From Octopus sinensis (lineage: Eukaryota), in NCBI RefSeq assembly GCF_006345805.1, contig NW_021834636.1:1-46345 (forward strand): a stretch of DNA of 46,345 nucleotides. Direction: 5' to 3'. A program made the position numbers and the translations under genes. The notes below the pieces were generated by a model. The model saw nothing but the letters and a program-made list of their open reading frames with translations. It ran no database searches and had not been told where the DNA came from. Below, piece by piece: positions 6,869 to 44,809 of this stretch. How positions within the stretch are numbered: position 1 is the first letter of the stretch; every line of letters begins with the position of its first letter.

Positions 6869-7287
6869 ACTCTTTTACTTGTTTCAGTCATTTGACTTTG
6901 GCCATGCTGAGCACCACCTTAAGACGAGCAAATCGACCCAAGGACTTATTCTTTGTAAGCCTAGTACTTATTCTATCGGTCTTTTTTGCCGAACTGCTAA
7001 GTTACCAGGACGTAAACACATCAGCATCAATTGTCAAACGATGTTGGGAGGACAAACACAGACACACAAACATATACTCTTTTACTTGTTTCAGTCATTT
7101 GACTGCGGCCATGCTGGAGCACCGCCTTTAGTCGAGCAAATCGACCCCAGGACTTATTCTTTTGTAAGCCCAGTACTTATTCTATCGGTCTCTTTTGCTG
7201 AACCGCTAAGTAACGGGGACATAAACACACCAGCATCGGTTGTCAAGGAATGCTATTGGGACAAACACAGACAAACACACACACGCA

Positions 7288-7322
<35 letters not shown>

Positions 7323-7495
7323 CGACGGGCTTCTTTCAGTTTCCGTCTACCAAATCCACTCACAAGGCTTTGGTCGGACCGATGCTATAGTAGAAGACAC
7401 TTGCCCAAGGTGCCACGCAGTGGGACTGAACCAACAGGCATCTTTCAGTTTCCATCTACCAAATCCACTCACAAGGCTTTGGTCGGCCTGAGGCT
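6869..7495 (-). mobile_element. Octopus-type SINE with internally duplicated 3' half
   Basis: TACTCTTTTACTTGTTTCAGTCATTTGAC occurs at about 6868 and 7075; body GACACTTGCCCAAGGTGCCACGCAGTGGGACTGAACC is shared with other copies in the window. Confidence 0.85.
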
Positions 7496-18196: not shown

Positions 18197-18914
18197 TGTA
18201 ATAAAAGGTATTCTGTACAATCTTCGTTCAACTCCATTTCTTCTATTCACTATATATATATATATACACGTGGTTACCACTATTGAAAAGACTGCCTCCA
18301 CGCGCTGCTACTACACTTTCGTCCTTGCCAGCAAAAAGGCTTCTTCGTTCGTCCCCTTTTGTGGTTAATTTCCTGTATAGTATTCTTGTTATTTTCTCGT
18401 TTTGTAACTAATTGTACTTTTTGTACATGTATTTCTATTTTTGCAGTTTTATTGTTTGTCTATGCCAGAAAAAAGGCTTTTTCGTTCGTCCTCTTGTGTT
18501 TGTTTTTGTACATGTATTTTAATTTTGGCAGTCTTATTGTTCGTCTTGTTTGTGTTCGTACTCATTGTGCCCCGCTGCTTGAAATTTTATTTAATTCTCT
18601 CGCAGGAAGGCCTATTGGATTAGTGTTCTGTTATGCCTTCGAAACATGCCTGACTCCTCTAGCGACAGCTGATGACGGGGGTTTTTGTCTTGTGTAACCT
18701 GTCCTGTATTTGGTTTTCGTTTTCCGTTTTCTTGTTTTTTGTTTTTTGGGCTTTTCTGTTTCTACGTCTTATTGTGATGTCCTGTACTTCCGTATAATTA
18801 TTTATATATGCATGTATATATACATGTAAATGTAGGTACGTACATATATGTTTGTATGTATGCATATATTTTTATTTATCTCCTATATATATATATATAT
18901 ATATACACATACAT

Positions 18915-18944
<30 letters not shown>

Positions 18945-18946
<2 letters not shown>

Positions 18947-19106
18947 CAGGAGTGGCTGTGTGGTAAGTAGCTTGTTTACCAACCACATGGTTCTGGGCTC
19001 AGTCCCATTGTGTGGTAGCTTGGGCAAGTGTCTTCTACTATAGCCTCTGGCCGACCAAAGCCTAGTGAATGGATTTGGTAGACGGAAACTGAAAGAAGCC
19101 CGTCGT
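18945..19106 (+). mobile_element. SINE 5' half
   Basis: GGAGTGGCTGTGTGGTAAGTAGCTTG...TTGGGCAAGTGTCTTCTACTATAGCC, shared with other copies. Confidence 0.85.
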
Positions 19107-19440
19107 ATATATGTATATATATATCTCAATTTTCACTCATTAAATTCCTGAAATTTCTATAACCATATTAATCTAAAGAAACTTGTCCCTTTTCACATCT
19201 TAGATAAACTTTTTAGGTCACTTTTAGAAAAGCAGGACGTGTGAGTACATATCCATCAGTTTATCTATCTAGCTAGTTAAACATACACGCATAGATACGT
19301 ACATACATATATATTTATACATACACACACATATATGTATGTTTGTATGTATGTACATATGTCCTATGTGTACGCTTTGTAGCATTTAATGCATTTTTCA
19401 TTTATAATAATATATATATATAGATATATATATGTATATA

Positions 19441-19822
19441 GGTGCAGGAGTGGTTGTGCGGTAAGTAGCTTCTATGAACCATATGGTTTTTGGGTTCAGT
19501 CCCACTATGTGGCACCTTGGGCAAGTGTCTTCTACTATAGCCTCAGGCCGACCAAAGCCTTGTGAGTGCATTTGGTAGACGGAAACTGAAAGAAGCTTGT
19601 CGTATATATGTATGCGTGTGTGTGTGTGTGTGTCCAGTATCGCTTGACAACCGATGGTGGTGTGTTTATGTAACCTAACACTTTGGCAAAAGAGATCTAT
19701 GGAATAGGTACTAGGCTTACAAAGAATAAGTCCTGGGGTCGACTTACTCGACTAAAGGCGGTGTTCCAGTCAAAATGGCCACAGTCAAAATGACTGAAAC
19801 AAGTACAGGAGTAAAAGACTCT
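19441..19822 (+). mobile_element. Near full-length SINE
   Basis: Same head and body plus 3' AAGAATAAGTCCTGGGGTCGAC...AAATGACTGAAACAAGTA...GAGTAAAAGA. Confidence 0.85.
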
Positions 19823-20348
19823 GTATATATATATCTCTATATATATAAACTGTGATGTGTTTTTACGCTTGCTTGGTTCTGTTTCAATGCCACTACATGC
19901 ATCCCGTCCCATTCGCTCCAAAATTTACAGGGACATGTAGAATGAGGTGACGATGCGCGTGGGCTACCTTACAAATCCCTATCTTAAAAGCTGTGGTTTC
20001 TAGGGGCCATCTTCCTACCTCACCCTATTTCCTCCAGTACTCTGTCACTCCTCTTCATTTGACAATGCAACTACCGTTATTTAATGTAAAGTCTTCCTCA
20101 AATCAATCTGTAGCTATTTACTCTCTTCCAAGAACATTTTCACTCACTCTATCTCTTACCTTCCTATACATTTTACTCATGTATCTCTCAGCGTTCATGG
20201 ACAGTAACATGGACACACACACACACACACACACATATACATATATCTAATATTATATTTTTATTTTTGTTTTTGTTTTTGGTTTTTACTGTTTCATTTC
20301 CCTATTAGTGGTTTTATCTCTAATTTAATTCTCTACAGCGTGCACACA

Positions 20349-24397: not shown

Positions 24398-24612
24398 TAG
24401 ATATATATGTTTATATTTTATTGACTAAACTGGCAAAATGACCATTCCGAAATATAACCATATTATATATATATAATATATATATATAATATATAATATA
24501 ATATATATATATATTATATAATATATATATATATGTATACATATATGGTTGTATGTATATATATAAATTATATATATATATATAAATATATATATATGTA
24601 TATATATTATTG
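24100..24612. repeat. Long compound (TA)n/(GA)n/(GATA)n microsatellite
   Basis: Direct inspection. Confidence 0.95.
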
Positions 24613-24614
24613 TA

Positions 24615-24835
24615 TACTCTTTAAACTCTTTTACATGTTTCAGTCATTTGACTGTGGCCATGCTGGAGCACAGTCTTTTGTCAAGTAAATCGACCCGAGG
24701 ACCTATTCTTTATAAACCTAGTACTTATTCTATCGGTAAGTATTCTACCGCTAAGTTATGGGGACGTAAACACATCAGCATCGGTTGTGAAACTATGTTG
24801 GGAGGACAAACACAGACACAGTAACATACACACAC

Positions 24836-24866
<31 letters not shown>

Positions 24867-25030
24867 TATATATATTCATATATACGACAGGCTTCCTTCT
24901 GTTTCCGTGACAAAGCTTTGGTCGGTCCGTAGGCTATGGTAGAAGACATTTGCCCATGGTGCCACGTAGTGGGATTGAACCTGGAACCATGTGGTTGGTA
25001 AGCGAGCTACTTCCCATACAGACACTCCTG
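24615..25030 (-). mobile_element. SINE copy
   Basis: Same blocks as 6869-7495 and 30894-31303. Confidence 0.85.
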
Positions 25031-27460: not shown

Positions 27461-27660
27461 TCACTTTGCGTCTAATGACAGACATTCCATCGCAGCGACA
27501 CATTCAGCTTCTTCAAGAGCTGCACTTAATGTTGCGTGTGTCCGTGTTTCTGGGTCGCAATTTTTGAACCATTCCTTAAGCATCAGGTAGCCTTGTTTTA
27601 CAGTGACATTAGACTCATCATCAATTTTCAGTTTAGTTGTATCAACTCCTAAAAAAATCG
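27461..27660 (-). CDS. Terminal coding exon: remainder of death domain and stop
   Basis: ttgtgtcttttgcag|CG (phase 1). (A)IFLGVDTTKLKIDDESNVTVKQGYLMLKEWFKNCDPETRTHATLSAALEEAECVAAMECLSLDAK*, with death-domain hallmarks Q-x3-ML-x2-W and L-x2-AL. TGA at 27463-27461. Confidence 0.85.
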
Positions 27661-28009
27661 CTGCAAAAGACACAACAATAAGAAATAAATGCAACAACAT
27701 CAACAATATTAACAATAATATAAAAGATGTGTGTTGTTATAAACATAACAAAGAAACTATTTCAAGAGAGAAATATAAAAAAATAGCTAAGAAACAAGAA
27801 AAATATAAGACATTGTTTTCTATTTCTAGGGATGATGAGAAAAATAACAAAGTGGTTAATTAATGGAGATTTTTTAAAAATTAGTTAAAGTTTACACTTG
27901 AGAATCTTTTAAGGTAACCGATGGCAGATGTGTTTGTGAAGGCAAAAGTGTATGAGAACCTAAAGAATCAACATAGGGTACCAACAGGCAAACCATTTGA
28001 TCCATTCAT

Positions 28010-28680
28010 TTCCTCTGCTCAGTATTTCTGGGAGAGTTGTGGGGATAGGGTCCCCAGGCATTTCTTCCATAGGGGCCTATCAGATGTAACCATCATTACA
28101 TATTTTGGTTGGATTCCCAAGCATCAACAACTAAGTCTATGGATATCATCCAACTATTTAGTGCTTGGTCTACCCCTGGGTCTCCTACTCCATTGGTTTT
28201 GACTTTGAGAACCTGTCTTGTAATTCAATCCTGCGACATTCTGATCACATGTCCTAGGTACCAGAGATGTGAAGAAGTGGCTCAACCTGGAGAGACTCCC
28301 AGATCTCTGAACTATACATCCTATTGGGTAACATTACTCCAGAGACCCTTCAGAGAAATCCCATATATCTGTCTTAATCTGGCAGATTTCAGATCTGATA
28401 TTCAAAGGGTCATGAAAGTAATGTCTCTCTGTGAAATCAATCACCTTGCAAAGTTCCCAAAATGACACTGAAAATCAAATGAATAATGATAGACCAACAG
28501 TCGATTATTCTAAGTCAAATCCAATCCTTTTTGAATCTACTCCAGATTCAATCAATTCTCCTGAACCCATTCAGTTATTCTTATGTCTCAGTGAGAGAGA
28601 GACCAGCCATGGTCTGGCTTCACTTGTGAATATATTTTCTGTCAAATTTCCTTAAATTCATTCTCTCTTTTTGGATGTGG
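28010..28680 (-). mobile_element. Degraded RTE (Expander/Rex3-like) 3' fragment in the last intron
   Basis: WYLGHVIRMSQD*ITRQVL..RPRGRPSTK*LDDIHRL..LGIQP..DRPLWKKCLGTLSPQ across stops. Confidence 0.65.
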
Positions 28681-28792
28681 GATATGATATGATTTGGCTG
28701 TGTCACCCCTATACTAAGTCTGTTTTTACTGAAGCATTTACAAACATATGTCATGTGGTAAAGTCATTTCAATATGGCAATATAAAAGAGAG

Positions 28793-29130
28793 AATACCAA
28801 ACTAATTCCCTATGGATACCGTATTTATTACAACGAGTGGCTTGTAAACGTATCTAACGAGCGAAAGTTAGATACGTTTACAAGCCACTCGTTGTAATAA
28901 ATATTGTATCCATAGGGAATGAGTTTGGTATTTTATTTATTACACACGAATAAACGACCATATTTTATTAACCCAATAACTAAATTCTTCACGTTTAGTT
29001 GTTACTTATGAATGACAAAAGTAGTGCCGTCACCGGGACCTCGGGTCATCACCATGAATTGACCAATCAGAAGCAGCGCTGTCACCGTTACCTCGGGTCA
29101 TCACCATGGATTGACCAATCAGAAGCAGCG
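28793..29130. mobile_element. Palindromic non-autonomous DNA element: 66-bp-arm hairpin plus a 2 x 52-bp direct repeat
   Basis: 28793-28858 pairs with 28867-28932 (37 bp perfect core, 8-nt loop GAGCGAAA); GTCACC...ACCAATCAGAAGCAGCGCT is duplicated at about 29026-29130. Confidence 0.6.
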
Positions 29131-29575
29131 CTCGTAGTATCTGACATATGTTAGATACCAAAAATATCTCAAAGTGTTCTCAATCACATGTGTGTAATAA
29201 TTGCAATTATCACTTTCAAACACAATAACCCAATCCCTAATGGCTTCAAGAAGACCCTAACTCATGGTCTTTTGATGGAGTAAAGACGAACCAAAAACGT
29301 TGTCAATAAACTCAGCTGTTTACCCTCAACATATTTTTCTTCTTTCTTCCTATATTAAATGCTACTTGTATTTTCTTGTGTACCACACACCAACACCAAC
29401 CTCAGTGGATACTTTATGAAATACCAGTAATATCATTAATAGAATTTATTTTGCAGCTAACCATTCCACTGGAAATTAGGAATGTAACCTGTTCTCTTTC
29501 ATCCTGACAAATGAAATAGCCCAGGTGAATGTAAAATTTATATAAATCAATTAGGTAGTGTAATTTTATACTCAC

Positions 29576-29647
29576 CTACTTGCCACCAATCTCTTCCTAA
29601 CCTCTTAGCCACTCTCAGAAGATCCTTCTCCTTCAGCTGTGGACTCC
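29576..29647 (-). CDS. 72-nt exon: N-terminal part of death domain
   Basis: atatttatttcag|GGAGTCCACAG...CAAGTAG|gtgagt; (G)SPQLKEKDLLRVAKRLGRDWWQV fits the death-domain L-x2-[IV]A-x2-LG-x-DW pattern; phase 1-1. Confidence 0.8.
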
Positions 29648-30239
29648 CTGAAATAAATATTTCCAAATTTTATAATTTATACTAAATTTCTTAATCTTTA
29701 TTCTTGAGGCATGCTTATCATCAATGGTCAACTGGTGACCACTGTGATTTTGGTCAACCTTTTTAATCTATGTAATAGCTCAATATTTTGGTCCACAACA
29801 AAATAGATTAAACTTCTTAAACTTCGTCTCTCTATCAAGACATCCTACATAATCTATCAATGTTGCATTTGTCACATTTAATTATCATTTGATAAGACTA
29901 TTTTTCTCACAGTTCTCTATTTCCCTTCTTATATCTGTACCAAACCTGTGACATGACTTCACTCACCAACATTTTTCTCATCTTCTGCTTAATTCTAATG
30001 TCAACCAAGGTGGTTTCCAAAGACCTAACCACAAATACACGGCAGACAAATTCATGTAGGATAAACATACACCTGACATCTTTGTTAAGGGTTGATGTTG
30101 GTAATCTTGAATCGTAACTCCGCACATCCCAGGTCACAAGAACATCATCTGATTCAGGAAATATTTTAAGACTCCTTAATAAAGAAGTTCTTTAAAACCC
30201 TTTATTCCCCAAAAGTTTTCGCTTATCTATTGCTCATAA

Positions 30240-32260
30240 GATGTCTTCTTTTTGTGCTATTATCTCGATGCCTCTACTCTTGTGGGACAATGAGGTAGTG
30301 TACCATCACCCTAAACAGTTTCTCTTTAACCTTTGACATGCTTTCTTCTGCTACTTTGAATTTCACTTATTTCTGCTGAGCTTTGGCCAATGACGGCAAC
30401 ATTTATTTGCCTTCAACCCTATTCTTGACCAACTAATTAATTAATACAGTCTATTCAGAACTATTTGCATATCCTTTTGCTCTGTTTGTGTTGTTATGCC
30501 ATCCATTAATGTCGTCTTAGGGGACTTCACTCGAGTTATTTCTTCTGATCAATCTGCTGATCTAATAAACATTTCCATAACAAGTACACAAAATGACTGA
30601 TATTGTGCAACCCACGGCAATTCCAGTCTCAAGACGATGCGAGTCTGTTGTGAAATGTTCTGTCCTGAAGCGCATTTTGAAATCATTACAGCAACTCTTC
30701 ATTAGATTCTCAATCTTTTCTCGTATATAAAAGACGTCCGTTGTTTTCAGCAACAATTCGTGTAGTACAGAACGATATGCATTAACCTGATCAAGCCATA
30801 CAACATTCAAATCGCTTTTGTTCTTCTTTGTATCTTGTATCGCATCCCAGATTCAAAATGCAAGTTCCACACATTCAGGGATTCCTGCCTTCTCTCTTTT
30901 ACTCTTTACTCTTTTATTTGTTTCAGTGAGCTGACTGTGGCCATGCTGGAGCACCGCTTTTAGTCGAGCATATCAACCCCAGGACTTATTCTTTGTAAGC
31001 CTGGTACTTATTCTATTGGTCTCTTTTCTCGAACAAATAAGTTACGGGGACGTACACAAACCAGCATCGGTTGTCAAGTGATGCTGGGGGAACAAACACA
31101 GACACACAAACATATACACATACATACATATGTATATATATGCGACGGGTTTATTTCAGTTTCCGTCTACCAAATCCACTCACAAGGCCTTGGTCGGCCC
31201 GAGGCTATAGTAGAAGACACTTGCCCAAGGTGCCACGCAGTGGGACATTAACCCGGAACCATGTGGTTTGTAAGCAAGCTACTTACCACACAGCCACTCG
31301 GACGCCTTCTGGATACTTTCCGTCCCATAACCATTATTTTGGAGATATGTAGTTGATCTCTTAGCAAGTACACCCATGTAAATCTTGCCATCTTCATTCA
31401 CGGTTGGAATTGTTCTGAACTGGTCGGTCGATTTTCCTTTAGCTCCCTTTGATAAGTAAACTCCTTTTACCTTGCATCAGCCATCCAGTTCACCTTTATA
31501 TCACAACTTTCAAAGTAGTAGGTAATACTTATAACACAATTGGGTATAATGCTTGTACACTTTCCATGGTACACCATCCCCTCCTGGGGCACTCTTTGCT
31601 CTTGTCCTCTTCCCTCAGCTATATACTTGCTTCTTACTGAAATCCCCAAGCTGAAATATTTGATTGCTGGTTTCCTTGGTAATTTCAAACTGTCCATGAG
31701 TGGGAATGTTTGATTTCACTTTGTGTCAGTGTAGGACGCCCGTGTCAACCCGTCTCTTTGCATCTTTATTGCATTTTAGCTTTCCACTCTTAGTATCTGC
31801 AAACTGTTTATGAGTAACCTCATATGGGTTCTTAGCAAGCTGCTCTCCATACCCTTTACTATCCTTTCCTGTTTCAACATGTCTCATATTTCTTTGAATA
31901 AGTTGAAAAGGAACGTTTAAGTTTTTTGAGGACATGACAATCTTTCTAGAACATGTGCCACAATAAAATGCACCCAGGACCCTTTATAAAGAGGTCGATG
32001 TTAAGAAGGGCATACCACCATAGAAAGGCTGAAATATTTTAGTGAGATGTGCTCCTCAACAAATGAAGTTGGGCAGTAATTCTCAATAAGAACTGACTTG
32101 GACAGTGACCACCCATGGGAATATGGAAATCATAAATGATGAAGGTCATATCATTGCATTGTATCTTCAAGCGAGAAAGAGAAACAAGGGTTGTTTCATC
32201 AAGAAAGCAAAGTCTTCTGCTTGGATAAAGACAATGTTTAGGTGGATGCAATGATAGATT
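30240..32260 (-). mobile_element. Decayed Hero-like (R2 superfamily) non-LTR RT fragment split by a SINE
   Basis: In order: KNPYEVTHK..SGKLKC, RAKSAPGGDGVPWKVYK, GVYLSK..QFRTIPTVNEDGKIYMGVLAKR..YLQNNGY..SIQKA, (SINE), KAGIPECVE..DLNVVWLDQVNAYRSVLH, LETGIAVGCTISVIL, MDGIT, LISWSRIGLKANK. Confidence 0.8.
30894..31303 (-). mobile_element. Full-length SINE with 7-bp target-site duplication
   Basis: GCCTTCT at 30887-30893 and 31304-31310; removing the insert restores the Hero IQKAG reading; (AGAGTAA)n-like tail. Confidence 0.9.
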
Positions 32261-32661
32261 TAGTATCAGTGAAAAACGACAGGGTGTTCACACTTGGAAG
32301 ATATTTCATAGTAATTCTGCCACATTATGAAAAGCATCTACCTAAACAACCACAATAATAAACAGGAAAAATCATAATTTCCTCACTTGTTTACACTTAA
32401 ACTACATCACTAGTTTCCTGTGGAAATGATAAAATTAACTCTGTTGTGCCTTTTTAATCCATTATTACCAACTGTGCTTACCTCGATGGATATTTCATGA
32501 CCTTTCAGTAATATCCATATCTTTAATACAATTATTTTGCAGGTAATCTTTCAATTTGAAAGTAAGAATATAACCTGTTTTCAGTTATTCTTTCAAGCAC
32601 AATATGCCCAGGGTAAGTAAACTTTATAGAAATCAATTGGGAACTGTTATTTTATACTCAC

Positions 32662-32733
32662 CACCTTGCTTGGATGTAGCCCCTAATAACTGTGCATCTG
32701 ATTGAACTCCTTTGTCCTCAAACTTTGGAGACA
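32662..32733 (-). CDS. 72-nt symmetric (1-1) linker exon, diverged copy of death-domain exon 1
   Basis: atctctttcag|TGTCTCCAAAG...CAAGGTG|gtgagtataaaat; open frame (V)SPKFEDKGVQSDAQLLGATSKQG aligns gap-free with SPQLKEKDLLRVAKRLGRDWWQV. Confidence 0.6.
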
Positions 32734-32754
32734 CTGAAAGAGATATTTCAAGGT

Positions 32755-32954
32755 AAAGTATACTAGCCATCTCAATATGGCTAACCACTAAGGGTGGCTG
32801 TTACTGTAGCTTGTAGCCCCAGGAGATCATCGTCTCCAGCTGGATTTAGGCACACTTTCTGTGCCCTTATGATATTTGCAAAGGGAGGTCATCCCTCTCT
32901 CGTCAACCTAAGTGATACGCACGGACTGCAGTTTCTAGGTATTTGCCTGTCTTC
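32755..32954 (-). mobile_element. 200-bp 5'-truncated retroposon 3' end with 13-bp TSD
   Basis: GATATTTCAAGGT at 32742-32754 and 32955-32967; terminal hairpin TAGCCAT-ctcaat-ATGGCTA at 32764-32783. Confidence 0.75.
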
Positions 32955-34314
32955 GATATTTCAAGGTTTTACATTTAATCGTATTTCTTTAGTATAAATA
33001 AACTATATTCTTTTATTGTTAGACATTTCTATCTCCAATGGTCAACTGGTGACACTCTGGGTTTGGTCAAGATTTTTATACTCTCTACAGTGACCCCATG
33101 TAATAACTCAGTATTTACGTCCACAACGAAATTGACTGACCGTCCTAAATCTCCACCATCTATTAAGACATCATACATAATCTAACAATGTTACCGTATT
33201 TCATTTAATTATCACTTGATAAAACTGTTTCCCCTTAGTTCTGTCTTTCTTTTCTTCTATCTGTGTCCAATCTATGACATATCATTGTTGTCTCACTTCT
33301 AGATTTCACTAACCAACATTCGTCTTATCTTCTGCTTAATTGTAAAGTCAGGGAAGTTGGTCATCAAAGATCTAACCACAGACACAACAGACAACTTCAA
33401 GTAGGATAAACATACAACTCCTCTCTTTGTTAAACGTTGCTGCTGGTAATCATTAATTTTAACTGCCTGCATCACAGTTTAACGGGATGTCAAGTGAAAT
33501 ATTTGAAAACACCCTAAAAAGTTCTTTTTTTAAATGGTGAGCAATGAATAGTTTTACACAGGTGGAACGGAAGGTGATATCAGGTGTTCTAAAAGACATC
33601 ACCTCATTAACAACTTATAAGAAACTGTTCATCCATATATTATTACAGTGAAAATAACTGAAATGATATACCTGAACAGGTTTTCAAGGAAATAGGGTAT
33701 CTCTGTTGACCCTATTTTATACAGCAGTCAAAGTTTACCCACTCATTTAATGTTTCCTCTATGACTGTGGTGGACATCCATGGTTTGAAAACCCAGTCAC
33801 AAGTAAATTTGAGAACACAAAAGTTACACCATTAAATGACAGAGACTGTCTTTCAGATGCCAATATAAAAAGAACATTACGAGGAACATGTAACTCTACT
33901 TACATCCCACACCATCAACACTACTATGTCATTTGTCCCTTATGCTAATTAAGATTAACTAATTAAAAAAGGTCATTATCATGCTTTATGAAATAGATTT
34001 AATTAGTGTCGCATATATAAAGAAATATGTTTCACAACATACTGTTTGATACGGAATGAAAGCAGAACAATAACATCTGAACTTTACTGGACGTTGGATG
34101 TCAATAATCCCAAATTGTAGGGATATGGTCCAATACCCAAGAAAACAATAGAAATCCATAGAGGGTAGCACAATGTAAAATCTTAGATGAGGGCAGAAGA
34201 TGATGCTATGACAAAATAAGGTTACATTTCAGAGATAAAAGCATTGAGTACTGGTGTGGACGTAATCACCTTACCCACTGCCCCAAACTGGCCGGCATTA
34301 AGCTAACGTTTCAA

Positions 34315-34560
34315 ATCAGTTTTCTTATACATATTAAAGCGGGGAACTGGCAGAATCGTTAGCACATTGCCCCAAATGCTTAGAGGCATTTCTTGCGGTT
34401 TAATGTTCTGAGTTCGAATTCTGCCTTGGTTGACTTTGCTTTCATCCTTTAAGGGCGGATAAAATAAGCAGCAGTTGAGCACTGGGGGTGATTAAATTGA
34501 AATACCCCCTACATCGAGCTCTCTGGCCTTGTGTCAAAACTTTAAAATCAATATTCTTAT
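34315..34560 (+). mobile_element. Diverged SINE
   Basis: GCGGGGAACTGGCAGAATCGTTAGCAC...GAGTTCGAATTCTGCC..GACTTTGCTTTCATCC..GATAAAATAAG; related to 2500-2590. Confidence 0.6.
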
Positions 34561-34899
34561 ACCGAGTTTATAATATATTTTTTGTTGTTTTATGACCCCA
34601 ATATGTATTCAAATCAGAGATGTTCTTGGTAGATACCCCAGTGAGAAGCAACATGTTACGACAAATATCTCACTAGGCAACAACAACAACAACAATAACC
34701 TATCGGGAAACAGGGCCCAGGACTTGGGAGAGAAATAGATAAAAACTTTCTCATCAACTCACCTGTTTACACACCATCAACAACATACTTTCCTCCCCTG
34801 TTCCAAAAGACAATATCAACTCTGTTGTGTCTTCTAATAAATCCATTTTACCAATCATGTTACCCTTGATTTTATGAAACTTCAGTAATATCTTTACTA

Positions 34900-35305
34900 T
34901 TTTACTCTTTTACTTGTTTCAGTCATTTGATCATTGCCATGCTGGAGCACCGCCTTTAGTCAAGCAAATCGACCCCAGGACTTATTCGTTGAAAGCCTAG
35001 TACTTAATCTGTCGGTCTCTTTTGCCGAACCGCTACGTTATGGGGACATAAACATACCAGCATCGGTTGTCAAGTGATGCTGGAGTGACAAACATAGGCA
35101 CACAAACATATATACACACATACATATATATATCTATATATACATATATACGATGGGCTTCTTTCAGTTTCCGTCTACCAAATCCACTCTGAAGGCTTTG
35201 GTCGGCCCGAGGCTATAGTAGAAGACAATTGTCCAAGGTGCCACGCACTGGGAATGAACCCGGAACCACGTGGTCGGTAAGCAAACTACTTACCACACAG
35301 ACACT
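34900..35305 (-). mobile_element. SINE copy
   Basis: Same family as 30894-31303. Confidence 0.85.
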
Positions 35306-35749
35306 CTTTAATAGAATTACTTTACAGTTAAACTTTCAAAAAACGCAATTTTTTACATTATTGAGAGACATTCCTTCCTTGCAATGGTCAATTGGTAACC
35401 ATTATGATTTTGGTCCACATTTTTCTAGTTTCTGTTCACCTGTTTACCCCTAAACAACAACATATCTTAGTTCTTGGTTCCAAAAGACAATATTAACTCT
35501 ATTGTGTTTTCTAATTTATCCATTTTTCCATCCAAGGCAACAAAGATTTTATGAAATTTCAGCGATATATTTCATCGACTCCTTTTGCAGCTAACATTTC
35601 AAATGGAAATTAGAGATGGGCCCTGTTCTCAGTCCTTCTGACAAACAAAACAGCTCAGGGAGTGGAGAATTTATAGGAATCAGTTAGGTACATTGATTTC
35701 TATAAATTTTTCCATCGCTTGTGTTTTATGGAAACGAATTGGTCATAGC

Positions 35750-35960
35750 AAGTGGAGGCGCACGGCTTAATGGTTAGGGTATTTGACTCATGATTGTAAG
35801 ATTGGGGTTTCGATTCCTTCACCAGGCAATACGTTGCGTTCTTGAGCAAAACACTTCCGTTCACTCAGCTGGCAAAAATAAGTAATCTTACAGCGAACTA
35901 GTGCCCTGTTCAGGGAGGAATGTATACGCTAGAGAAACCGGGAAACCAACCCTATGCCTC
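35750..35960 (+). mobile_element. tRNA-derived SINE (family of 23762-24098)
   Basis: GGAGGCGCACGGCTTAATGGTTAGGG...GGTTTCGATTCC...TTGAGCAAAACACTT. Confidence 0.7.
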
Positions 35961-36001
35961 TTATGGGATAACATAATTAGGTACAGTTATTTCATACTCA
36001 C

Positions 36002-36052
36002 CAACTGGTCCTGCCACCATCTGGACTTCCATCTTTGACGAATTTGGACCAA
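36002..36052 (-). CDS. 51-nt symmetric (1-1) linker exon, diverged copy of death-domain exon 1
   Basis: gtatttttcag|TTGGTCCAAAT...CCAGTTG|gtgagtatgaaat; open frame (V)GPNSSKMEVQMVAGPV; flanking introns homologous to those around 29576-29647. Confidence 0.55.
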
Positions 36053-36544
36053 CTGAAAAATACATTTCAAAGTGGTTTTAGTAAAATTTCTTTATCCTTT
36101 CTAATAATCGATATTTTATTATTGTGAGACATTCGTGTCATCACTGATGACAACATGCTTTTGAGAACATTTGTATGCTTTCTACAGTGGGGCCAAGTAA
36201 TGGTTCACTATTTGAGTCCACAACAGAATAGACTACACTTAACAACCCTTCTCTGTCTCTTAAGTCATCCAACAATTCTAACAATTCTGAAATTATCTCA
36301 TTTAATTATCCCCTAATAACCGATTTCTCTTAGCTTCGTTTGGGTTTTCTTATATTTGTGCCAGATCTATGACAAGACATCTCTAATCAACATTCGTCTC
36401 ATCTTCTGCTTAAATCCAGTGTCAACCAAGTTGAGCATCGAAGTCCTAGCCTCAAACACGACATACCACTTCCAGACGGATATATATCTATATCTATCTA
36501 TTTGTTTTGCAAGATTTTTGATGTGAAATGGTGTGTTGAAACAG

Positions 36545-37047
36545 ATATTGTTGTATTTAGGAATGGTCATTTTGCCAGTTTAGCCAATAAAAACACACGC
36601 ACTATATATTTGGTGTTACTTTGCTTCAGCGTTATTTATTTTTTACTTTAATCTTAATCTTATTTCGGCAAGAGTTCTTTCATCACACTCCTGTGACCTC
36701 ATCAGTGGTCCTTTGCTTTCTTCTTTCTTATTTGTGTGTCTCTCCTTACTAACCATCAGCCCTTTTGTATTTTGTATTCCTATTGTACGTGTCCTCATTT
36801 GTGCATGCGTATACCTCTATGTGTGTCTATGTTTAGTTAGTGTGCGTGGGGGGGGGGTTGAAGTGCCTGTAATATTTGTATCTCCTGTTTATATACGTAC
36901 GTGTAATTTGTTTTTGCTTTTGGCCGAAATAAGATTAAGATTAATATAAAAAATAAATAAGACTGAAGCAAAGTAACACCAAATATATAGTGCGTGTGTT
37001 TTTATTGGCTAAACTGGCAAAATGACCATTCCCAAATACAACAATAT
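36545..37047. repeat. 125-bp inverted repeat with 253-bp spacer
   Basis: 36545-36669 is the reverse complement of 36923-37047 with few mismatches; a fragment of the same sequence is at about 24420-24460. Confidence 0.9.
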
Positions 37048-37132
37048 ATCTATCTATCTATCTCTCTCTCTCTATATATATATATATAGATAGATATATA
37101 TGTATATACACACACACACACATACACACACA

Positions 37133-37208
<76 letters not shown>

Positions 37209-38024
37209 CCTGCTCTCTTTGTTATTGGTTACTACTAGTAATCTTTAATCTTAATTACCCACATCACAGTTCCCCGGAATGTAATCAGATGTGGGGAAAT
37301 ATCTGAAGATATTTCAATGTCATTCATCCTCCTGAATAAAGCAGGTCAAACAGAAAGTGACATCAGGTCTAACAGGAAGTGATATCTCGTGTCCTAAATT
37401 AACACACTACATTCACACAAAACCTCATTAACGACATAAAACTTGTCGTCCACACATTATTGCTGTGAAAATATTTGAAACGGTTCAGAAGAACTGATAC
37501 TCGGGAATACTAATCTATACATCAATCAAAGTTTCCCCACCCTTTTGATGTCCCCTCTCTAATGTTGGCCCCTAAACCCTCAGTTGAGATTTTCTTATTG
37601 AGTCTCCTATTTTTATAAGGCTCACTTGATATTCATATAAATGCAGTTGTTTTTAATTATCAGCTTCCGAAGATATTGATAAATCATTAATCACTCTAAT
37701 CACACACAAGATGTCGGTATTTACTGATAGAACCTTGGTGATTTATTGGTATTTAGTCACCATTTATAATTCAGTATTCTTTATTATTTTTATGTTGCAG
37801 AAAGTAACCATCTTGAAGTGTGACAAAGTCTTCTAATTGGACAAGAACAATGTTTAGTGGGAGTAGTGAGAGACATAATATGACAGAGAAAAAGACACCT
37901 GGAACATCTTTTATCAAAAGTGTGCTTGATTAAGGCAGAACTGGATTTACACAACAACATGAAATACAATATTCCACACCATAAAGCCCATGAGACAAAC
38001 AGACAGATCATACAGTATTATTAC

Positions 38025-38167
38025 CCAAACTATTTTTGTTCGTTATCTTCTGTCCACACGTAGGGCATCGTTTAGGTATCTTTTGGGGACAGCATTTCTT
38101 ACACAGCGAAAGATGTTTACATGGAAAGAACGTCTCTGTGGCCACTTCGTCTTCACAAAACACACAT
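38025..38167 (-). CDS. Exon: RING-HC finger of MIB/IAP type
   Basis: Acceptor gtttttgttcctcag|A (phase 2, giving CA+A=Gln with the previous exon). Encodes CVFCEDEVATETFFPCKHLSLCKKCCPQKIPKRCPTCGQKITNKNSL = C-x2-C-x11-C-x-H-x3-C-x2-C-x8-C-x2-C. Donor G|GTAATA (phase 1). 143 nt. Confidence 0.85.
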
Positions 38168-38358
38168 CTGAGGAACAAAAACATGAACACATCCCATTAA
38201 TAACATTCATTTATAACAAATATTACATTGTGTGCATATTTACAGTAGAGAATATTATGCGACACCACAATTAAACAATTACATATGGGCGAATTTGTGT
38301 GTATATAAATGCAGACACAGACACACAGACACAGACAGAGATACACACACACACACAT

Positions 38359-38389
<31 letters not shown>

Positions 38390-38617
38390 AATGGACACAA
38401 ATATTAATAAGTATATGTCATGACATTGATACATCACAAAAACTGATGTACGCAAAGTGAACAACATATATTCCAGAAATATAATTCACTTATATATATA
38501 TGTGTGTCTGTGTGTGTGTGTGTGTGTGTGTCCGAGTCAGTCGCCATGATAGATTGTTAGCCGCTACACACATTTTTTTCTCTCCTTGTTTCTATCCTTG
38601 TTTTTTTTTCCGTGTCC

Positions 38618-38653
38618 CTTTCTGTAGAAGAGCGAAGGCTCGAAACGTAAAAG
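38618..38653 (+). ncRNA. Minimal hammerhead-like motif with atypical core
   Basis: CTTT-CTGTAGA-A-GAGC(gaag)GCTC-GAAA-CG-TA/AAAG; palindromic ACGT stem III; A6 replaced by U and one extra A. Confidence 0.4.
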
Positions 38654-38714
38654 ACTTTTTCTATTCCTTCAATACCACCTGTCATCGTCTTTTGTTTTTT
38701 TCGTAAACTCTCCC

Positions 38715-38788
<74 letters not shown>

Positions 38789-38838
38789 TGTGTGTGTGTG
38801 CGTATATGTATATATATATATATATATATACATATACG

Positions 38839-38884
<46 letters not shown>

Positions 38885-39016
38885 CACGGGGGGAAATAAT
38901 ATACGTGCATGTCAAAATTCTTTCTTTATTTAATTTCTAATGAACATAAATGGGATATACCACTATTATATATTTGCATACAGATGCATAAACTAAGAAT
39001 ATGCAAAAGAAACTAA

Positions 39017-42000
39017 CACACCTCCCAAACCCTCAGAGTTGGCACGCTCAACGTTGGCACATTGAAAGGTAGGTCTGGAGAGATTGTAGAGCTGCTTGAA
39101 CGGAGACGTGTGGATGTATGCTGTATCCAGGAAGTAAGGTGGAGAGGAGGTTCTGCTAGGCTCCTCACGGGCAAGGAACACAGGTACAAGATTTTCTGGG
39201 CAGGGAACATTGACGGAGTCGGGGGCGTGGGTATACTTCTTGCGGAGAAATGGATAGGTAAGGTAATCGAGGTAGTCAGAGTAAGTGACAGAGTAATTAA
39301 AATTAGATTAGTTCTTCACCATAGGACAGCTACCATCATCTCGGCATATGCCCCTCAACCAGGGCTACCGGAAGGACAAAAAGACCAATTCTATGACACC
39401 CTATTGCGGACTACCTCATTGACAAATGACAGTGACCTTCTCTTCGTGGCAGGTGATTTCAATGGACATGTTGGACGACATGTCAGGGGCTTCCATGGCA
39501 TCCATGGAGGCCACGGTTTTGGCTCTTGAAATGAGGAGGGAACCAGGCTGCTGGAGTTCTGCGATGCAAATGACCTTATGGTCTGCAATACCCACTTCAG
39601 GAAACCCACCTCTCACCTAGTCACCTACCGTTCTGGCAGACACACCAGCCAGATTGACTACATCCTTGCCAGAAAAAGGGAAAGAGGGCTGATTATAAAT
39701 GCCAAAACCAACCCAGGCGAAGAATGTACTCCCCAACATAGATTAGTAGTTAGCGACTTCAGGATCAGAGCTAAATGGTTGCCCAGAAGAAGACCAGCTT
39801 GGAGGAGAAGGGTCTGGAAGCTTAAAGATCCTGCAAATGGACAGAGATTTAGAGACATACTACTCGAAGCCTCTGACGAAATAGAAGGGGATATAGCTCC
39901 ACTTAATGTGGAAGACAACTGGAGATTTCTACGGGACAATCTGCTGACAGCCACTGACCAGATCTGTGGATGGAGCAAAGTACCATCTCGACCCAGAGTT
40001 ACATGGTGGTGGAACACGGTGGTTGACGGGGCTATTAGACAAAAGAGACAGGCTTGGAAGGACTGGAAGAACGGTGGTAGCAGGGAATTGTATCAGACAG
40101 CCAAAAGGGAAGCTAGGAGACAGGTTTATTTAGCCAGAGGGGAAGCGGATAAGAAAAAATTTGCCAATGTTCTGAGCCGTGAGGATGAAAGACTTGAGGT
40201 ATTTCGTGTTGCAAGACAGTGTGTGAGAGAGAATCGTGATGTGGTAGGAGAGAAGTGTGTTCGCATGGATGATGGTTCACTTGCGCTAAATGAGGATGCA
40301 AAGAGAGAGGTTTGGAGATGCCACTATGAAAGTTTGCTGAATAAAGAAAATGAATGGGATAAAGAGAGTCTGCCAAATGTTGACCCAACAGAGGGACCAG
40401 CTATCCGAGTTGATAGTTCCGTGGTAGCTAAGGCAATTAGAAGCATGAAGACAGGGAAAGCCCCAGGCCCATCAGGAATTACTGCAGAGATGCTCAAAAT
40501 ATCTGGCAGTGTCGGCTATAACCTAGTCACCCGTATAGTCAACCAGGTGATACACGAAGGAGTCATACCCAATGACTGGTGTAGCAGCATACTAGTCAAC
40601 TGCTACAAAGGTAAAGGTGATGCCCTGGATACAAATAATTACAGAGGTATCAAGCTGTTGGATCAGGTAATGAAGGTTACGGAGAGAGTCATAGCCCAAC
40701 TAATTAGAGAGAGAGTTAGTTTAGATGAGATGCAGTTTGGGTTTGTCCCAGGGAAAAGCACCACTGATGCTATATTCCTGGTAAGGCAGCTGCAGGAGAA
40801 ATACCTAGCCAAGGATAAGCCCCTGTACCTGGCTTTCGTTGACATGGAGAAAGCCTTTGATAGGGTCCCCCGATCCCTCATCTGGTGGTCAATGAGGAAA
40901 CTAGGGATAGATGAATGGCTGGTGAGGGCTGTGCAAGCCATGTACAGAGATGCCGTAAGTAAGGTTAGAGTTGGCAACATGTACACAGAAGAATTCAAGT
41001 AGAGGTTGGGGTCCACCAGGGTTCAGTACTCAGCCCCCTCCTATTTATCATAGTCCTCCAGGCAATAACGGAGGAATTCAAGACAGTTGCCCCTGGGAGC
41101 TCCTCTATGCTGACGACCTCGCTCTAATCGCTGAGTCACTATCAGAACTGGAGGAGAAGTTCCAGGTGTGGAAGGAGGGTTTAGAATCGAGGGGCCTTAG
41201 AGTCAACCTAGCTAAAACCAAAGTACTAATAAGTAGAAAGGTAGAAAACCCACAAATATCCTCAGGAAGATGGCCCTGCTCGATCTGTAGAAAAGGTGTA
41301 GGTAGAAACTCTATAAGATGTACCCAGTGTAAGCTATGGACACATAAGAGGTGCAGCAATGTCAAAGGTAGGCTAACTGGGAAGATAGTTTTTGTACGTG
41401 GCAGGTGCTCTGGAGCATTGACCTCCGAAAATCTGCAGAAAACAACTTCTGTCACTTTCCGGGGGGAAAAACTAGAAGTAGTTGATAGCTTCCACTATCT
41501 AGGTGACCAAGTCAGTAGTGGGGGTGGGTGCGCTGAAAGTGTAACTGCTAGAATAAGAATAGCCTGGGCAAAGTTTAGGGAGCTCTTACCTCTGCTGGTG
41601 ACTAAAGGCCTCTCGCTCAGAGTAAAAGGCAGACTGTATGATGCATGTGTACGAACAGCTATGCTACATGGCAGTGAAACATGGGCCGTGACTGCTGAGG
41701 ACATGCGTAAGCTCGTGAGGAACGAAGCCAGTATGCTCCAATGGATGTGTAATGTCAGTGTACTTACTCGACAGAGCGTGTACCTTGAGAGAAATGTTGT
41801 ACCTAAGAAGCATCAGTTGTTGTGTGCAAGAGAGACGATTGCGCTGGTATGGTCATGTGGCGAGAATGGATGAAGATAGGTGTGTGAGAAAGTGCCAATC
41901 CCTAGCAGTTGAGGGAACCCGTGGAAGAGGTAGACCCAGGAAAACCTGGGACGAGGGGTGAAGCACGACCTTCGGACGTTAGGTCTCACCATGGAAATGA

Positions 42001-42678
42001 CTAGAGACCGAGACCTATGGAAGTATGCTGTGCGTGAGAAGACCCGGCAAGACTAGTGAAGCCATAATCCGTGGCCCCTACCTGGGACGTAGTCAGTCCA
42101 CCTGTGCATACCTTCCTTCTTGTGACACTTGTGAAGACCTGTTGAGGCAAGTGAGAATCGAATCGTATCGAATCAAATCGAACCAAATCAAAATAGATGA
42201 ACATCAATGGAATTTGTATCCTCGTGGTACCAGTGCCGGTGGCACATAAGAAAACCATCCGAACGTGACCGTAGCCAGTACCGCAATGACTGGCCTCCGT
42301 GCTGAGGGCACGTAACAAACACCATCCGAGCGTGGCCGTCCGCCAGCCTCGTCTGGCACCTGTGTCGGTGACACATAAGAAAACACCATCCGAGCGTGGC
42401 CGTCTGCCAGCCTCGTCTGGCACCTGTGTCGGTGGCACATAAAAAACACCATCCGAGCGTGGCCGTCTGCCAGCCTCGTCTGGCACCTGTGTCGGTGGCA
42501 CATAAAATCACCCACTACACTCTCGGAGTGGTTGGCGTTAGGAAGGGCATCCAGCTGTAGAAACACTGCCACATCTGACTGGCCTGGTGCAGCTTCGGCT
42601 TCCCAGACCCAGTTGAACCGTCCAACCCATGCTAGCATGGAAGCGGACGTTAAACGATGATGATGAGATGATGATGAT
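39017..42678 (+). mobile_element. RTE LINE, 5'-truncated: APE endonuclease, RT and PHD-like zinc finger; 1 stop and 4 frameshifts
   Basis: GTLNVGTLKGR, CCIQEVRW, AGDFNGHVG and SQIDYIL (APE); KAPGPSG, NYRGIKLL, FVDMEKAFDRV, GVHQGSVLSP and LLYADDL (RT); CSICRKGVGRNSIRCTQCKLWTHKRC. TGA at 39527; shifts at about 40998, 41085, 41780 and 41955; stop at 42054-42056; (GAT)n tail. Confidence 0.97.
42317..42510 (+). repeat. Three tandem 64-bp repeats in the RTE 3' UTR
   Basis: ACACCATCCGAGCGTGGCCGTC(C/T)GCCAGCCTCGTCTGGCACCTGTGTCGGTG(A/G)CACATAA x3. Confidence 0.95.
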
Positions 42679-44011
42679 TATAGTAACTAGGAATTTATAT
42701 ACATTATAAATATTTAGGGGTGAAAAAAGTATTCGTACAGAATATAAATAACTGATAATTCTGATATGATACTTCGTAGCATAACCATTATTCAGTTCCA
42801 CTTCAACCAATCTCTTCTTGTAGTTCTTCACCAATGACTCGCATGTTTCTTTAGGAACTTTTTTCTATTCTTCTTGACAAATTTTCTTCAAATCTGTAAT
42901 GCATGTTGGGGCTCTTGAATTTCAGTTTTCAAATAACGCCACAAATTTTCAATGGGGTTCAAGTCAGGTGACAGGCTTGGCCATTACAATAATTTTATAT
43001 TGTGATTGACAATCCATATTTGGTAGACTTCACCGTGTGCTTAGGGCCGTTACCCTATTGTAAAACCCACCCTTCACAAAGCTGGAGCTTTTCAACAGAG
43101 TCCCATAAATTATTGTTCAAAATATTTTGGTACATCTCTGCATTCATTCTACCATCTATCACATGTAAATTGCCAGTACCATTTGCAGAGAAACACCCCC
43201 ACACCTCCAATCTTTACGGTAGGAATTGTGTTTTTACTCCAAACATGGGTAAGCGAATTTCGTCCAAACAATTCATTTTCGTCTCGTCTGTCCATAGAAC
43301 ATTTTCCCAGAATGTATCAGATTTATCTTTATGTTCATAACAAATTTTAAACGGGCATCTCTATGCCTTTTAGTCAACAGAGGAGTTTTTTCTAGGAGAG
43401 CGTGACTTCAGTTCATTCCTATGAAAACTCCTTTCTGGTGATTATTGCGTTTTTTTATATTCTTCTCTTCATTTTTCTTAAAGATCTTGGGGAAATCTTG
43501 CGTGGTGCTCCGGATCTTATTCTGTTTTCAACAGTTCCCGATTCCTTATATCTTTGAATAAATGAAGATATGGTAGTAAGCGGAATACAAAGTGTCTCTG
43601 ATATTTTCCTGTAACTTTTACCTACTTTCTACAGTTCAATAATTAAGTTTTTCTCTGAATTTGTGAGTTCTTTACTTTTCGCCATTATTGCGATATCACT
43701 TTATGTTGTCTCAGTGCTGAATGAAGAAGCTAGTGTTTTGACACTCAAAAATGAAAACTGATAAGATTATTGGAATAAACAAATTTCTAGTAAAAAATAT
43801 TTTAACAGTATTTTGTGGCATAGAAAATCATACATTTATTCTGTACGAATACTTTTTTCACCCTAAATATTTATAATTGTATATAAATTCATTAGTTACC
43901 ATAATTTATTAGTTTCTTTTGCATATTCTTAGTTTATGCATGTGTATGCAAATATATAATAGTGGTATATCCCATTTATGTTCATTAGAAATTAAATAAA
44001 GAATTTTGACA
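42679..44011 (-). mobile_element. Decayed Tc1-family DNA transposon (left arm continues at 38910-39016)
   Basis: Transposase remnant 43685-42769: MAKSKELTNSEKNLIIEL, FWENVLWTDETK, Q*GNGPKHT, WPSLSPDLNPIENLW, LVKNYKKRLVEVELNNGYATKY. Inverted repeat AGGGTGAAAAAAGTATTCGTACAGAAT on both sides. Confidence 0.9.
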
Positions 44012-44046
44012 GACGAATATTTATTTCCTCCCCACAGTATAATATA

Positions 44047-44098
<52 letters not shown>

Positions 44099-44630
44099 AT
44101 CTATGTATGCATATATAAATACGTATGTATGTATGTATCCATGTATGTATCTATGTATGCATGTATAATACGTATGTATGTATGTATCCATGTATGTACA
44201 CTCATTGTATGTGTTTGTAGTGATTTTCTCAGGATAGCTCACATGGACATGACTGGTGGGACAGAGAAAACAGAGGAACAATCTGTTGGTAGACAGATAA
44301 ATTCCATCACTTCACTATTTACTTCTACATTTTCTCATTGGTCCCAAATCTTTAAAAGGGAACTGAGAGGGGTGGGTGGGGATTTTAGGAGAGGTATAAA
44401 GTCAACACAACCAATCATTTGAATGTAATCAAAATAATGTTCTTTCTTTAATTATCTTAACATCTGCATATTGTTTATTGTTCTTCTTACTGCTGTTGTC
44501 TAACCTTTCCTTAAGCCACTAAGACAGTATAATGTAACAGTAGAATTAAAACAATATAAACATATAAACACGGTTATATACAAAACAGAAAATGTAATGG
44601 TTTATCTTGTCATTGCCAGTGAATACTTAC

Positions 44631-44809
44631 TGCATTGGTGGGAATAACATATTTAACGTCTTTTTTAAATTTTCCTTTTCTATTAGGTCCAATGGTGTTC
44701 TGCCAATTTTGTTTTTACAGTAAAAGTTGGCCACGTGGTGGGCTAGGTAGCAAGCAACTACCACACCAGAGTACCTTTGTTTCTTTCCCAGTTTCAGATC
44801 TTTTAAGTA
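44631..44809 (-). CDS. Exon of MIB-like E3 ligase: last ankyrin repeat (most 5' exon visible; upstream exons lie beyond the window)
   Basis: Translates YLKDLKLGKKQRYSGVVVACYLAHHVANFYCKNKIGRTPLDLIEKENLKKTLNMLFPPM, resembling the final ANK repeat of Mind bomb ([24 protein letters not shown]). Donor CA|GTAAGT at 44631/44630 (phase 2). Acceptor ttcatcatttgaag|TAC is plausible but less certain. Confidence 0.75.

Follow-up and report, generated by a model that had tools for sequence, protein, structure and literature searches.

In vertebrates, cIAPs, MIB2, TRAFs and Pellino reach death domain (DD) complexes through separate adaptors or other domains, and to our knowledge no human or well-studied model-organism protein joins a true DD to a RING E3 ligase. 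Mammalian MIB2, a Mind bomb protein, reaches oligomeric RIPK1 via its MIB/HERC2-ZZ-MIB/HERC2 (MZM) module and ubiquitinates it, DD lysines included (PMC5912950); it also ubiquitinates cFLIP-L (PMC7815719). In oysters, IAPs with BIR-DD-RING (TII-DD-RING) layouts have been described (PMC8917759). The present analysis concerns a stretch of 46,345 nucleotides (nt) from Octopus sinensis (contig NW_021834636.1), referred to throughout as the window, which between positions 27461 and 44809 of its minus strand holds the 3′ two-thirds of a gene. This gene is one of a multigene family in Octopus whose members share an ankyrin (ANK)-RING-linker-DD layout. It is probable, though well short of assured, that they are E3 ligases docked into DD assemblies by a RIPK1-like DD, with linker cassettes that arose from a DD exon.

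Exon structure and the Octopus family

A six-exon minus-strand model was rebuilt from the window sequence, and its outer coordinates are exactly those of the preliminary description, which had joined six exons with canonical splice sites and compatible phases into a 238-residue C-terminus (Table 1). All internal borders are AG...GT, and the joined exons span 717 nt, encoding 238 residues and a TGA stop. Exon 1, bounded by a ttgaag/TAC acceptor and a CA/gtaagt donor, shares 96% DNA identity with its counterpart in the gene of the O. sinensis protein P0001. Among Protein Data Bank (PDB) sequences it weakly matches the ankyrin region of MIB1 (8v0e_A, E 0.039), and in the scan of the joined peptide it is matched by none of the Pfam Ank models. 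That scan thus returned two of the three domains previously proposed for it, zf-C3HC4_3 and Death, and no Ank. Exon 3, together with its flanks, is 100% identical to an exon of P0001, and isoform X3 (P0002) skips the equivalent exon. Exon 4 has AG/GT borders and is in frame. Exon 5, 100% identical to its O. sinensis counterpart, begins both the Pfam Death match and the high-confidence DD helices of the structural model. Since AATAAA and ATTAAA are abundant in the AT-rich DNA downstream of the stop, poly(A) signals are uninformative here.

The joined peptide retrieved 47 proteins at E <= 1e-3 (best E 1.5e-111; 130-413 residues), all from O. sinensis, O. vulgaris or O. bimaculoides and mostly named “E3 ubiquitin-protein ligase MIB2-like” or “MIB1-like”. 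The best match is P0001 itself (“MIB2 isoform X1”, 274 residues), which shows 90% identity over aligned columns, the same order of parts, and exons that map one-to-one to window exons 1, 2, 3, 5 and 6. The direct junction of exons 1 and 2, PPMQCVFC in the window, reads PPTQCVFC in P0026 and P0039. The RING-linker-DD order is also found in O. bimaculoides and in the O. vulgaris CAI/CAJ entries, which come from another annotation pipeline; the complete ANK-RING-linker-DD layout occurs in more than 50 proteins of the three species. The architecture set out in the preliminary description is therefore borne out, with the same junctions in RefSeq models of near-identical loci. Together with the Pfam matches, this goes well beyond what chance would give. 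Judged by these predicted models and those of paralogs, which join RING and DD in one frame in three species, RING exon and DD exons are parts of one gene, as had been claimed.

A profile search of 1.84 billion cluster representatives yielded 54 proteins at E < 1e-30. Profiles built from the family's own RING and DD both matched 61 of the 187 proteins retrieved, and every such protein whose source was looked up came from Octopus; a second, named profile search gave 49 matches, again all Octopus. This agrees with the earlier view of the architecture as lineage-specific, every named relative with both domains being an Octopus protein. In the same collection, proteins of the octopod Argonauta hians and of an annelid carry a similar DD with no RING, a faint hint that RING and DD are fused in Octopus or close kin only. 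Family matches lie on more than 30 contigs or chromosomes, with some clustering, as about 15 fall on a single 12-Mb O. vulgaris scaffold.

The window is colinear with three loci: L001 (O. sinensis VCDQ01009215.1, ~96-97% identical to the window), L002 (O. sinensis VCDQ01005710.1, 96.7% identical in one 7,969-bp alignment) and L003 (O. vulgaris CATOCA020000001.1, ~95-97.5%). The window locus stands to these as a very close relative, as a paralogous copy or as a structural haplotype. L002 has three tandem units (see below) as in the window, and many single-base indels (~1.3%), within exons too, that break its reading frame and are probably an artefact of assembly quality. L001 and L003 have two units, and in both the intron that precedes the DD exon carries an extra reverse-transcriptase (RT) fragment. 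L001 was considered as the ortholog of the window and set aside, L002 fitting the three-unit structure better than the two-unit loci with their additional insertion. Because L002 matches the window while L001 and L003 share the other structure, at least two near-identical loci or structural haplotypes exist.

The RING finger

The Pfam model PF13920 (zf-C3HC4_3) covers residues 59-102 with 34.8 bits against a cut-off of 27 (E 1.5e-8). All eight zinc ligands are present in the arrangement C61-x2-C64-x11-C76-x-H78-x3-C82-x2-C85-x8-C94-x2-C97, and all are invariant in 12 of 12 diverse paralogs. The AlphaFold2 model assigns the RING a predicted local distance difference test (pLDDT) score of 72-79. 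By sequence and structure together, the nearest solved RINGs are those of cIAP2, cIAP1, XIAP and IDOL, of which a Foldseek search of the PDB returned IDOL, cIAP2 and XIAP. Read by eye, the hydrophobic residue of C-x-(F/W/L/Y)-C is general among the paralogs, and the window and many of them retain the proline of C-P-x-C. No BIR domain was matched in the window peptide or in the Pfam list of any family member, and on such domain scans the resemblance to IAPs is confined to the RING.

The death domain

A failure of the DD segment to score against death-fold hidden Markov models, which the preliminary description had named as grounds for giving up its reading, was not seen: the segment passes the Pfam cut-off and its predicted fold superimposes on known DDs. 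Pfam Death (PF00531) matches residues 157-232 with 23.0 bits against a cut-off of 22.6 (E 8.8e-5), and scores for the window peptide range over 23.0-24.0 bits (E 4e-5 to 9e-5). Across the 12 diverse paralogs, Pfam recognizes the RING in all and the DD in 10, with a best Death E of 1.7e-13. The AlphaFold2 model, built on a 28-sequence family alignment, reaches a pLDDT of 82-89 over the DD (residues ~150-234). Foldseek aligns this region to the RIPK1 DD (6ac5) over 93 columns with a target-normalized template modeling (TM) score of 0.78 and a root-mean-square deviation (rmsd) of 2.5 Å. The TM scores, normalized in the same way, are 0.79 for FADD and 0.72 for RAIDD, and for these three DDs the probability is 1.00 and the rmsd 2.5-2.8 Å; over the DDs of RIPK1, FADD, RAIDD, PIDD and TNFR1 the TM scores span 0.60-0.79. 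The corresponding E-values are only ~1e-2 because the query is a short domain within a multi-domain model. A profile of 12 family DDs searched against PDB sequences likewise placed the RIPK1 DD first, at full length (E 7.7e-12), followed by ankyrin-3, PIDD, ankyrin-2 and -1, Fas, CRADD, FADD and TRADD. The window gene retains the invariant core residues of the DD.

A DD of the same type occurs elsewhere in octopus proteins. It ends an adhesion G-protein-coupled receptor-like protein of O. bimaculoides (P0135, leucine-rich repeat-GPS-7tm_2-Death), and partial copies stand in a leucine-rich-repeat protein of O. vulgaris (P0038). Going by these sequences, exon shuffling seems to have carried the DD into other genes of octopus.

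Linker cassettes derived from a DD exon

The linker between RING and DD, named simply as such in the preliminary description, is more than a spacer. Five direct-repeat families (D3, D5, D7, D10 and D11) are present in three copies each, spaced 3.05-3.35 kb apart, and outline three tandem units in which exons 3, 4 and 5 occupy equivalent positions. The three exons align through their polypyrimidine tracts, AG acceptors and “GGTGAGTATAAAATAAC” donors, exon 3 differing from the other two by a 21-nt deletion. The cassette peptides still begin as the DD exon does, with (S/A/C)P-x-(F/L/S)-(E/K)-(D/E)-(K/R)-x-(V/L)-Q, and have lost its “LGxxW” core. On this alignment, the first DD exon was duplicated in tandem, and its diverged copies, exons 3 and 4, act as optional cassettes. 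Over the residues that they encode (108-148) the AlphaFold2 pLDDT is ~30, and the linker is predicted to be disordered. The locus thereby offers a clean example of a structured-domain exon that was tandemly duplicated into optional disordered linker cassettes, and this origin of the linker by exon duplication is the most distinctive detail of the finding.

The number of cassettes is variable throughout the family: paralogs bear 0-5 of them, 17 or 24-25 residues long, and the count differs among isoforms of single genes. Cassettes of the exon 4 type are used by the paralog models P0075, P0062, P0009 and P0061; of the RefSeq isoforms at L002, P0215 includes exon 4 and P0214 omits it; and unit 2, which carries exon 4, is entirely missing from L001 and L003. 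Exon 4 is most likely optional, and products of 238 and 214 residues from this 3′ part of the gene are therefore plausible. A repeat of ~410 bp resembling a short interspersed nuclear element (SINE) flanks unit 2 on both sides in the window. In L001 and L003 a single SINE-like copy aligns to both window copies and unit 2 is gone, which is the signature of recombination between repeat copies. Further copies of this repeat lie near 7075-7432, 18885-19847 and 24521-25030.

Each unit also contains a second conserved segment, labeled ‘a’, which has no Pfam match and ends at GT in units 2 and 3, with GA at that place in unit 1. It was considered as an exon and excluded, its phase 0 clashing with the neighboring exons; one database model (P0073) uses an equivalent segment as an alternative 3′ end, without RING and DD. 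The idea of TRAF-binding-like motifs in the cassettes was also dropped, none being visible by eye in those of the window.

Relation to Mind bomb

Among proteins that do not belong to the family, genuine Mind bomb proteins (P0130, P0167, P0101 and P0098) are among the top matches across the last ankyrin repeat and the RING; proteins of this type combine MIB_HERC2, ZZ, SH3_15, ANK and two to three zf-C3HC4_3 RINGs. The closeness of the ANK-to-RING stretch to these proteins is the reason for the “MIB” names in RefSeq, and it supports a Mind bomb-like ancestor as the source of the ANK-RING module. The remaining domain content is different. Longer paralog models (up to 413 residues among the peptide matches and ~650 overall) begin with ankyrin repeats. 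A comparison of one of them, P0018, with PDB sequences gave generic ankyrin matches (ankyrin-1, DARPins, TRPA1) and is uninformative as to MIB specificity. No family member has the MZM module in its Pfam list, not even longer models such as P0018 in which ankyrin repeats follow the initial Met; the same scan detects it in the true Mind bomb protein P0130. The SH3 repeat of Mind bomb (REP, PF18346), found in the outgroup proteins P0130, P0167, P0101 and P0098, is likewise absent from family members. The order of ankyrin repeats and RING is kept, the single RING being followed by linker and DD as opposed to the two or three C-terminal RINGs of Mind bomb. Because the longer models lack MIB_HERC2, ZZ and SH3 repeats and have one RING, the gene, on its domain content, does not show the defining features of a strict Mind bomb paralog. 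Of the earlier proposal of a lineage-specific MIB paralog with its terminal RINGs swapped for a DD, the restriction to Octopus and the Mind bomb-like ANK-RING part thus survive, and strict paralogy with a RING swap is abandoned. The “MIB2-like” names in RefSeq mislead in two ways, as they hide the DD and imply a Notch-pathway Mind bomb orthology unsupported by domain content.

The sequences themselves are already public as automatic predictions, mostly “MIB2-like” in RefSeq and in some cases “Death domain-containing protein” in UniProt. In the open-access literature covered by the search, no description of an ANK-RING-DD family was found, for cephalopods or elsewhere.

Proposed function

From domain content we infer that the family has E3 activity, docks through its DD and plays an immune or cell-death role. 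In the mechanism proposed here, the RING would recruit an E2 enzyme and the ankyrin repeats would hold a substrate or partner, while the DD would dock the ligase by homotypic contacts into DD oligomers, such as RIPK1, FADD or TNFR-type receptor or adaptor complexes. Components of the DD complex would then be ubiquitinated. Clustering of DDs may also bring RINGs together and activate them, and the number of cassettes would determine how far the RING can extend from the DD hub. By analogy, the RIPK1-like DD may do the recruiting in place of the MZM module used by mammalian MIB2. A more ambitious version, which we hold to be doubtful, makes the family an octopus-specific, fast-diversifying arm of innate immunity or cell death, in which variable ankyrin surfaces would recognize targets, the DD would replace the MZM and alternatively spliced cassettes would tune the distance between DD and RING. 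If the proposed function is correct, a family with DD and RING hard-wired in one chain constitutes a natural experiment in targeting ubiquitination to DD assemblies. The family would also give a handle on the poorly known innate immunity and cell death of cephalopods.

Evolutionary rate and alternative readings

Window and L001 were compared by the Nei-Gojobori method over their five shared exons (645 nt). The 24 coding differences comprise 21 non-synonymous and three synonymous changes; the non-synonymous rate (dN) is 0.043 and the synonymous rate (dS) 0.022, giving a dN/dS of ~1.9 that is not significantly greater than 1 (p = 0.22); introns mismatch at a rate of 0.025. Exons 3 and 5 are the same in both copies, and the differences are concentrated in loops of the RING and in two patches of the DD. 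Because the alternative states of the changed patches, for example DDESNVTV versus DDESIDAV, recur among paralogs, the pattern suggests gene conversion or diversifying selection.

Several observations weigh against a family of DD-docked ligases as the account of this gene. The ankyrin portion inside the window consists of one last, degenerate ankyrin-like exon, the N-terminus lies outside, and the 9.7 kb upstream of the gene at O. sinensis L001 contain no further family or ankyrin exons; the window gene may therefore code for a short product containing few ankyrin repeats. For the single sequence, the Death score barely exceeds the Pfam cut-off. Support for the junctions comes from predicted models of near-identical loci (~96-97% DNA identity) and paralogs, and several models (P0039, P0021, P0028 and P0061-63) end past the RING or a cassette by reading into the intron, so that isoforms without the DD may be common. 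Finally, the comparison of window and L001 gives no sign of purifying selection, and from these data positive selection, gene conversion among paralogs and relaxed constraint are indistinguishable.

Relaxed constraint is the core of one alternative, in which the locus is a decaying recent duplicate or pseudogene whose exons are intact by youth and serve no maintained function. We consider this unlikely. A dN/dS of ~1.9 with dN above the intron mismatch rate would fit decay, yet the amino-acid differences fall in patches that match paralog states, better explained by gene conversion or diversifying selection than by random loss, and exons 3 and 5 are 100% identical to the L001 copy. Further tokens of decay are the loss from the window of an O. 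sinensis microexon, a 3.7-kb retrotransposon in intron 1, the lack of ankyrin exons in the 9.7 kb upstream at L001 and the many very similar paralogs; against them stand six exons that are all open with canonical splice sites, the eight zinc ligands, the retained invariant DD core and the several RefSeq isoforms annotated at the O. sinensis loci. Far less probable still is a true MIB1 or MIB2 paralog whose MZM and REP lie upstream of the window and whose C-terminal RINGs were replaced by a DD. Longer models such as P0018, P0046, P0033, P0048 and P0067 begin with ankyrin repeats and have no MIB_HERC2, ZZ or SH3_15 in their Pfam lists, the upstream 9.7 kb of L001 hold no further family exons, and there is a single RING. 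What speaks for such a paralog is the RefSeq naming of relatives as MIB2-like or MIB1-like, the genuine Mind bomb proteins among the nearest non-family ANK-to-RING matches, and the fact that the window includes just the end of the ankyrin region, with the N-terminus beyond it. Barely credible, finally, is a separate downstream gene for the DD exons, with the six-exon join an artefact of compatible phases. The introns are indeed long (~2 to 6.5 kb) and repeat-rich, and some database models stop past the RING or a cassette. However, dozens of independent models from three species and two annotation pipelines join RING and DD in frame, exon 5 begins in phase 1 and so needs an upstream exon to open its frame, and it was the DD exon itself that gave rise, by duplication, to the cassettes lying between RING and DD. 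The reading of one Octopus gene family with an ANK-RING-linker-DD layout and DD-directed E3 ligases remains the one we prefer.

Insertions, repeats and a missing microexon

Intron 1 contains a non-LTR (long terminal repeat) retrotransposon of 3.7 kb with an Exo_endo_phos endonuclease open reading frame, RVT_1 open reading frames and a PHD/C1-like zinc finger. Since it is absent from L001, L002 and L003, it is a recent insertion. An RT fragment at 14102-14940 on the minus strand is 96.7-97% identical to the copy that L001 and L003 carry in the intron that directly precedes the DD exon, a position at which the window has none; by its sequence it looks like a member of a young transposon family. 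Two further elements were noted on the minus strand. One, at ~8600-10450, is a Penelope-like remnant with RT-like open frames followed by a GIY-YIG motif (weak Pfam match, E 9e-4) and a strong GC skew; the other, at ~42860-43630, is a decayed Tc1/mariner transposase with a match to a Sleeping Beauty-type helix-turn-helix, broken into several frames.

In O. sinensis, a 48-nt microexon, HGGGRRMDQALKGPIR, lies between the ankyrin and RING exons (L001 16683-16730; L002 about 10001-10030). It was left out of the window model, as the ~1.3-kb stretch that bears it is missing from the window between 38238 and the RING exon. The introns are filled with long (CA)n/(TA)n tracts (37026-37225, 38270-38900, 44020-44200 and many more), which give rise to numerous false open frames with a high content of Cys, Val, Tyr and Ile.

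Table 1. Exons, tandem units and repeats of the octopus gene, in window coordinates
Feature	Position	Strand	Phase	Content or basis
Exon 1 (in-window part)	44631..44809	-	0-2	Last ankyrin-like repeat and RING lead-in, YLKDLKLGKKQRYSGVVVACYLAHHVANFYCKNKIGRTPLDLIEKENLKKTLNMLFPPM
Exon 2	38025..38167	-	2-1	Complete zf-C3HC4_3 RING, model residues 61-97
Exon 3	36002..36052	-	1-1	51 nt; linker cassette VGPNSSKMEVQMVAGPV; copy in tandem unit 1
Exon 4	32662..32733	-	1-1	72 nt; linker cassette VSPKFEDKGVQSDAQLLGATSKQG; copy in tandem unit 2
Exon 5	29576..29647	-	1-1	72 nt; first DD exon GSPQLKEKDLLRVAKRLGRDWWQV; copy in tandem unit 3
Exon 6	27461..27660	-	1-stop	Remainder of DD; TGA at 27461-27463
Tandem unit 1, conserved core	35583..36580	-		Holds exon 3; direct repeats and exon/flank alignment
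Tandem unit 2, conserved core	32535..33480	-		Holds exon 4; direct repeats and exon/flank alignment
Tandem unit 3, conserved core	29449..30190	-		Holds exon 5; direct repeats and exon/flank alignment
Second conserved (‘a’) segment per unit	29913-30191, 33281-33478, 36370-36579	-		Open frame ...SLETTLVDIRIKQKMRKML
SINE-like repeat, upstream side of unit 2	34888..35306			Partner copy 30895-31307
SINE-like repeat, downstream side of unit 2	30895..31307			Repeat families D2, D6, D12
Non-LTR retrotransposon in intron 1	39016..42677	+		Pfam Exo_endo_phos, RVT_1; outside gene product

Comparison with known systems

Ankyrin repeats together with a C-terminal DD are found in ankyrins, ANKDD1A/B, NF-kB p100/p105 and DAPK1, and the DDs of ankyrin-3, -2 and -1 are the next-best matches to the family DD after RIPK1. 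We know of no RING in any of these proteins, and the ankyrins have ZU5-UPA modules that are absent from the octopus proteins. The DD of RIPK1 is the closest to that of the family by both sequence profile (E 7.7e-12) and fold (TM 0.78), at an identity of ~22%, a likeness that does not show mutual binding; unlike RIPK1, the octopus proteins have neither a kinase domain nor a RHIM.

The pairing of a death-fold domain with a zf-C3HC4_3 RING in one polypeptide is shared with cIAP1 and cIAP2 (BIRC2/3) and with the mollusc BIR-DD-RING IAPs, which among described proteins come nearest to the octopus layout. The cIAPs also act in death-receptor signaling, and the RING of the window is closest to those of cIAP, XIAP and IDOL. 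In contrast, the octopus proteins have no BIR, carry a true DD (PF00531) where cIAP1 and cIAP2 have a CARD, and place this DD C-terminal to the RING, so that their RING is internal while that of the IAPs is C-terminal. With Mind bomb proteins (MIB1, MIB2) the family shares an ankyrin array directly before a zf-C3HC4_3 RING, and mammalian MIB2 acts in DD-centered TNF complexes with RIPK1 and cFLIP (PMC5912950, PMC7815719). It differs from Mind bomb in lacking MZM and REP, in its single RING, in its size of ~150-650 residues and in the DD at its C-terminus.

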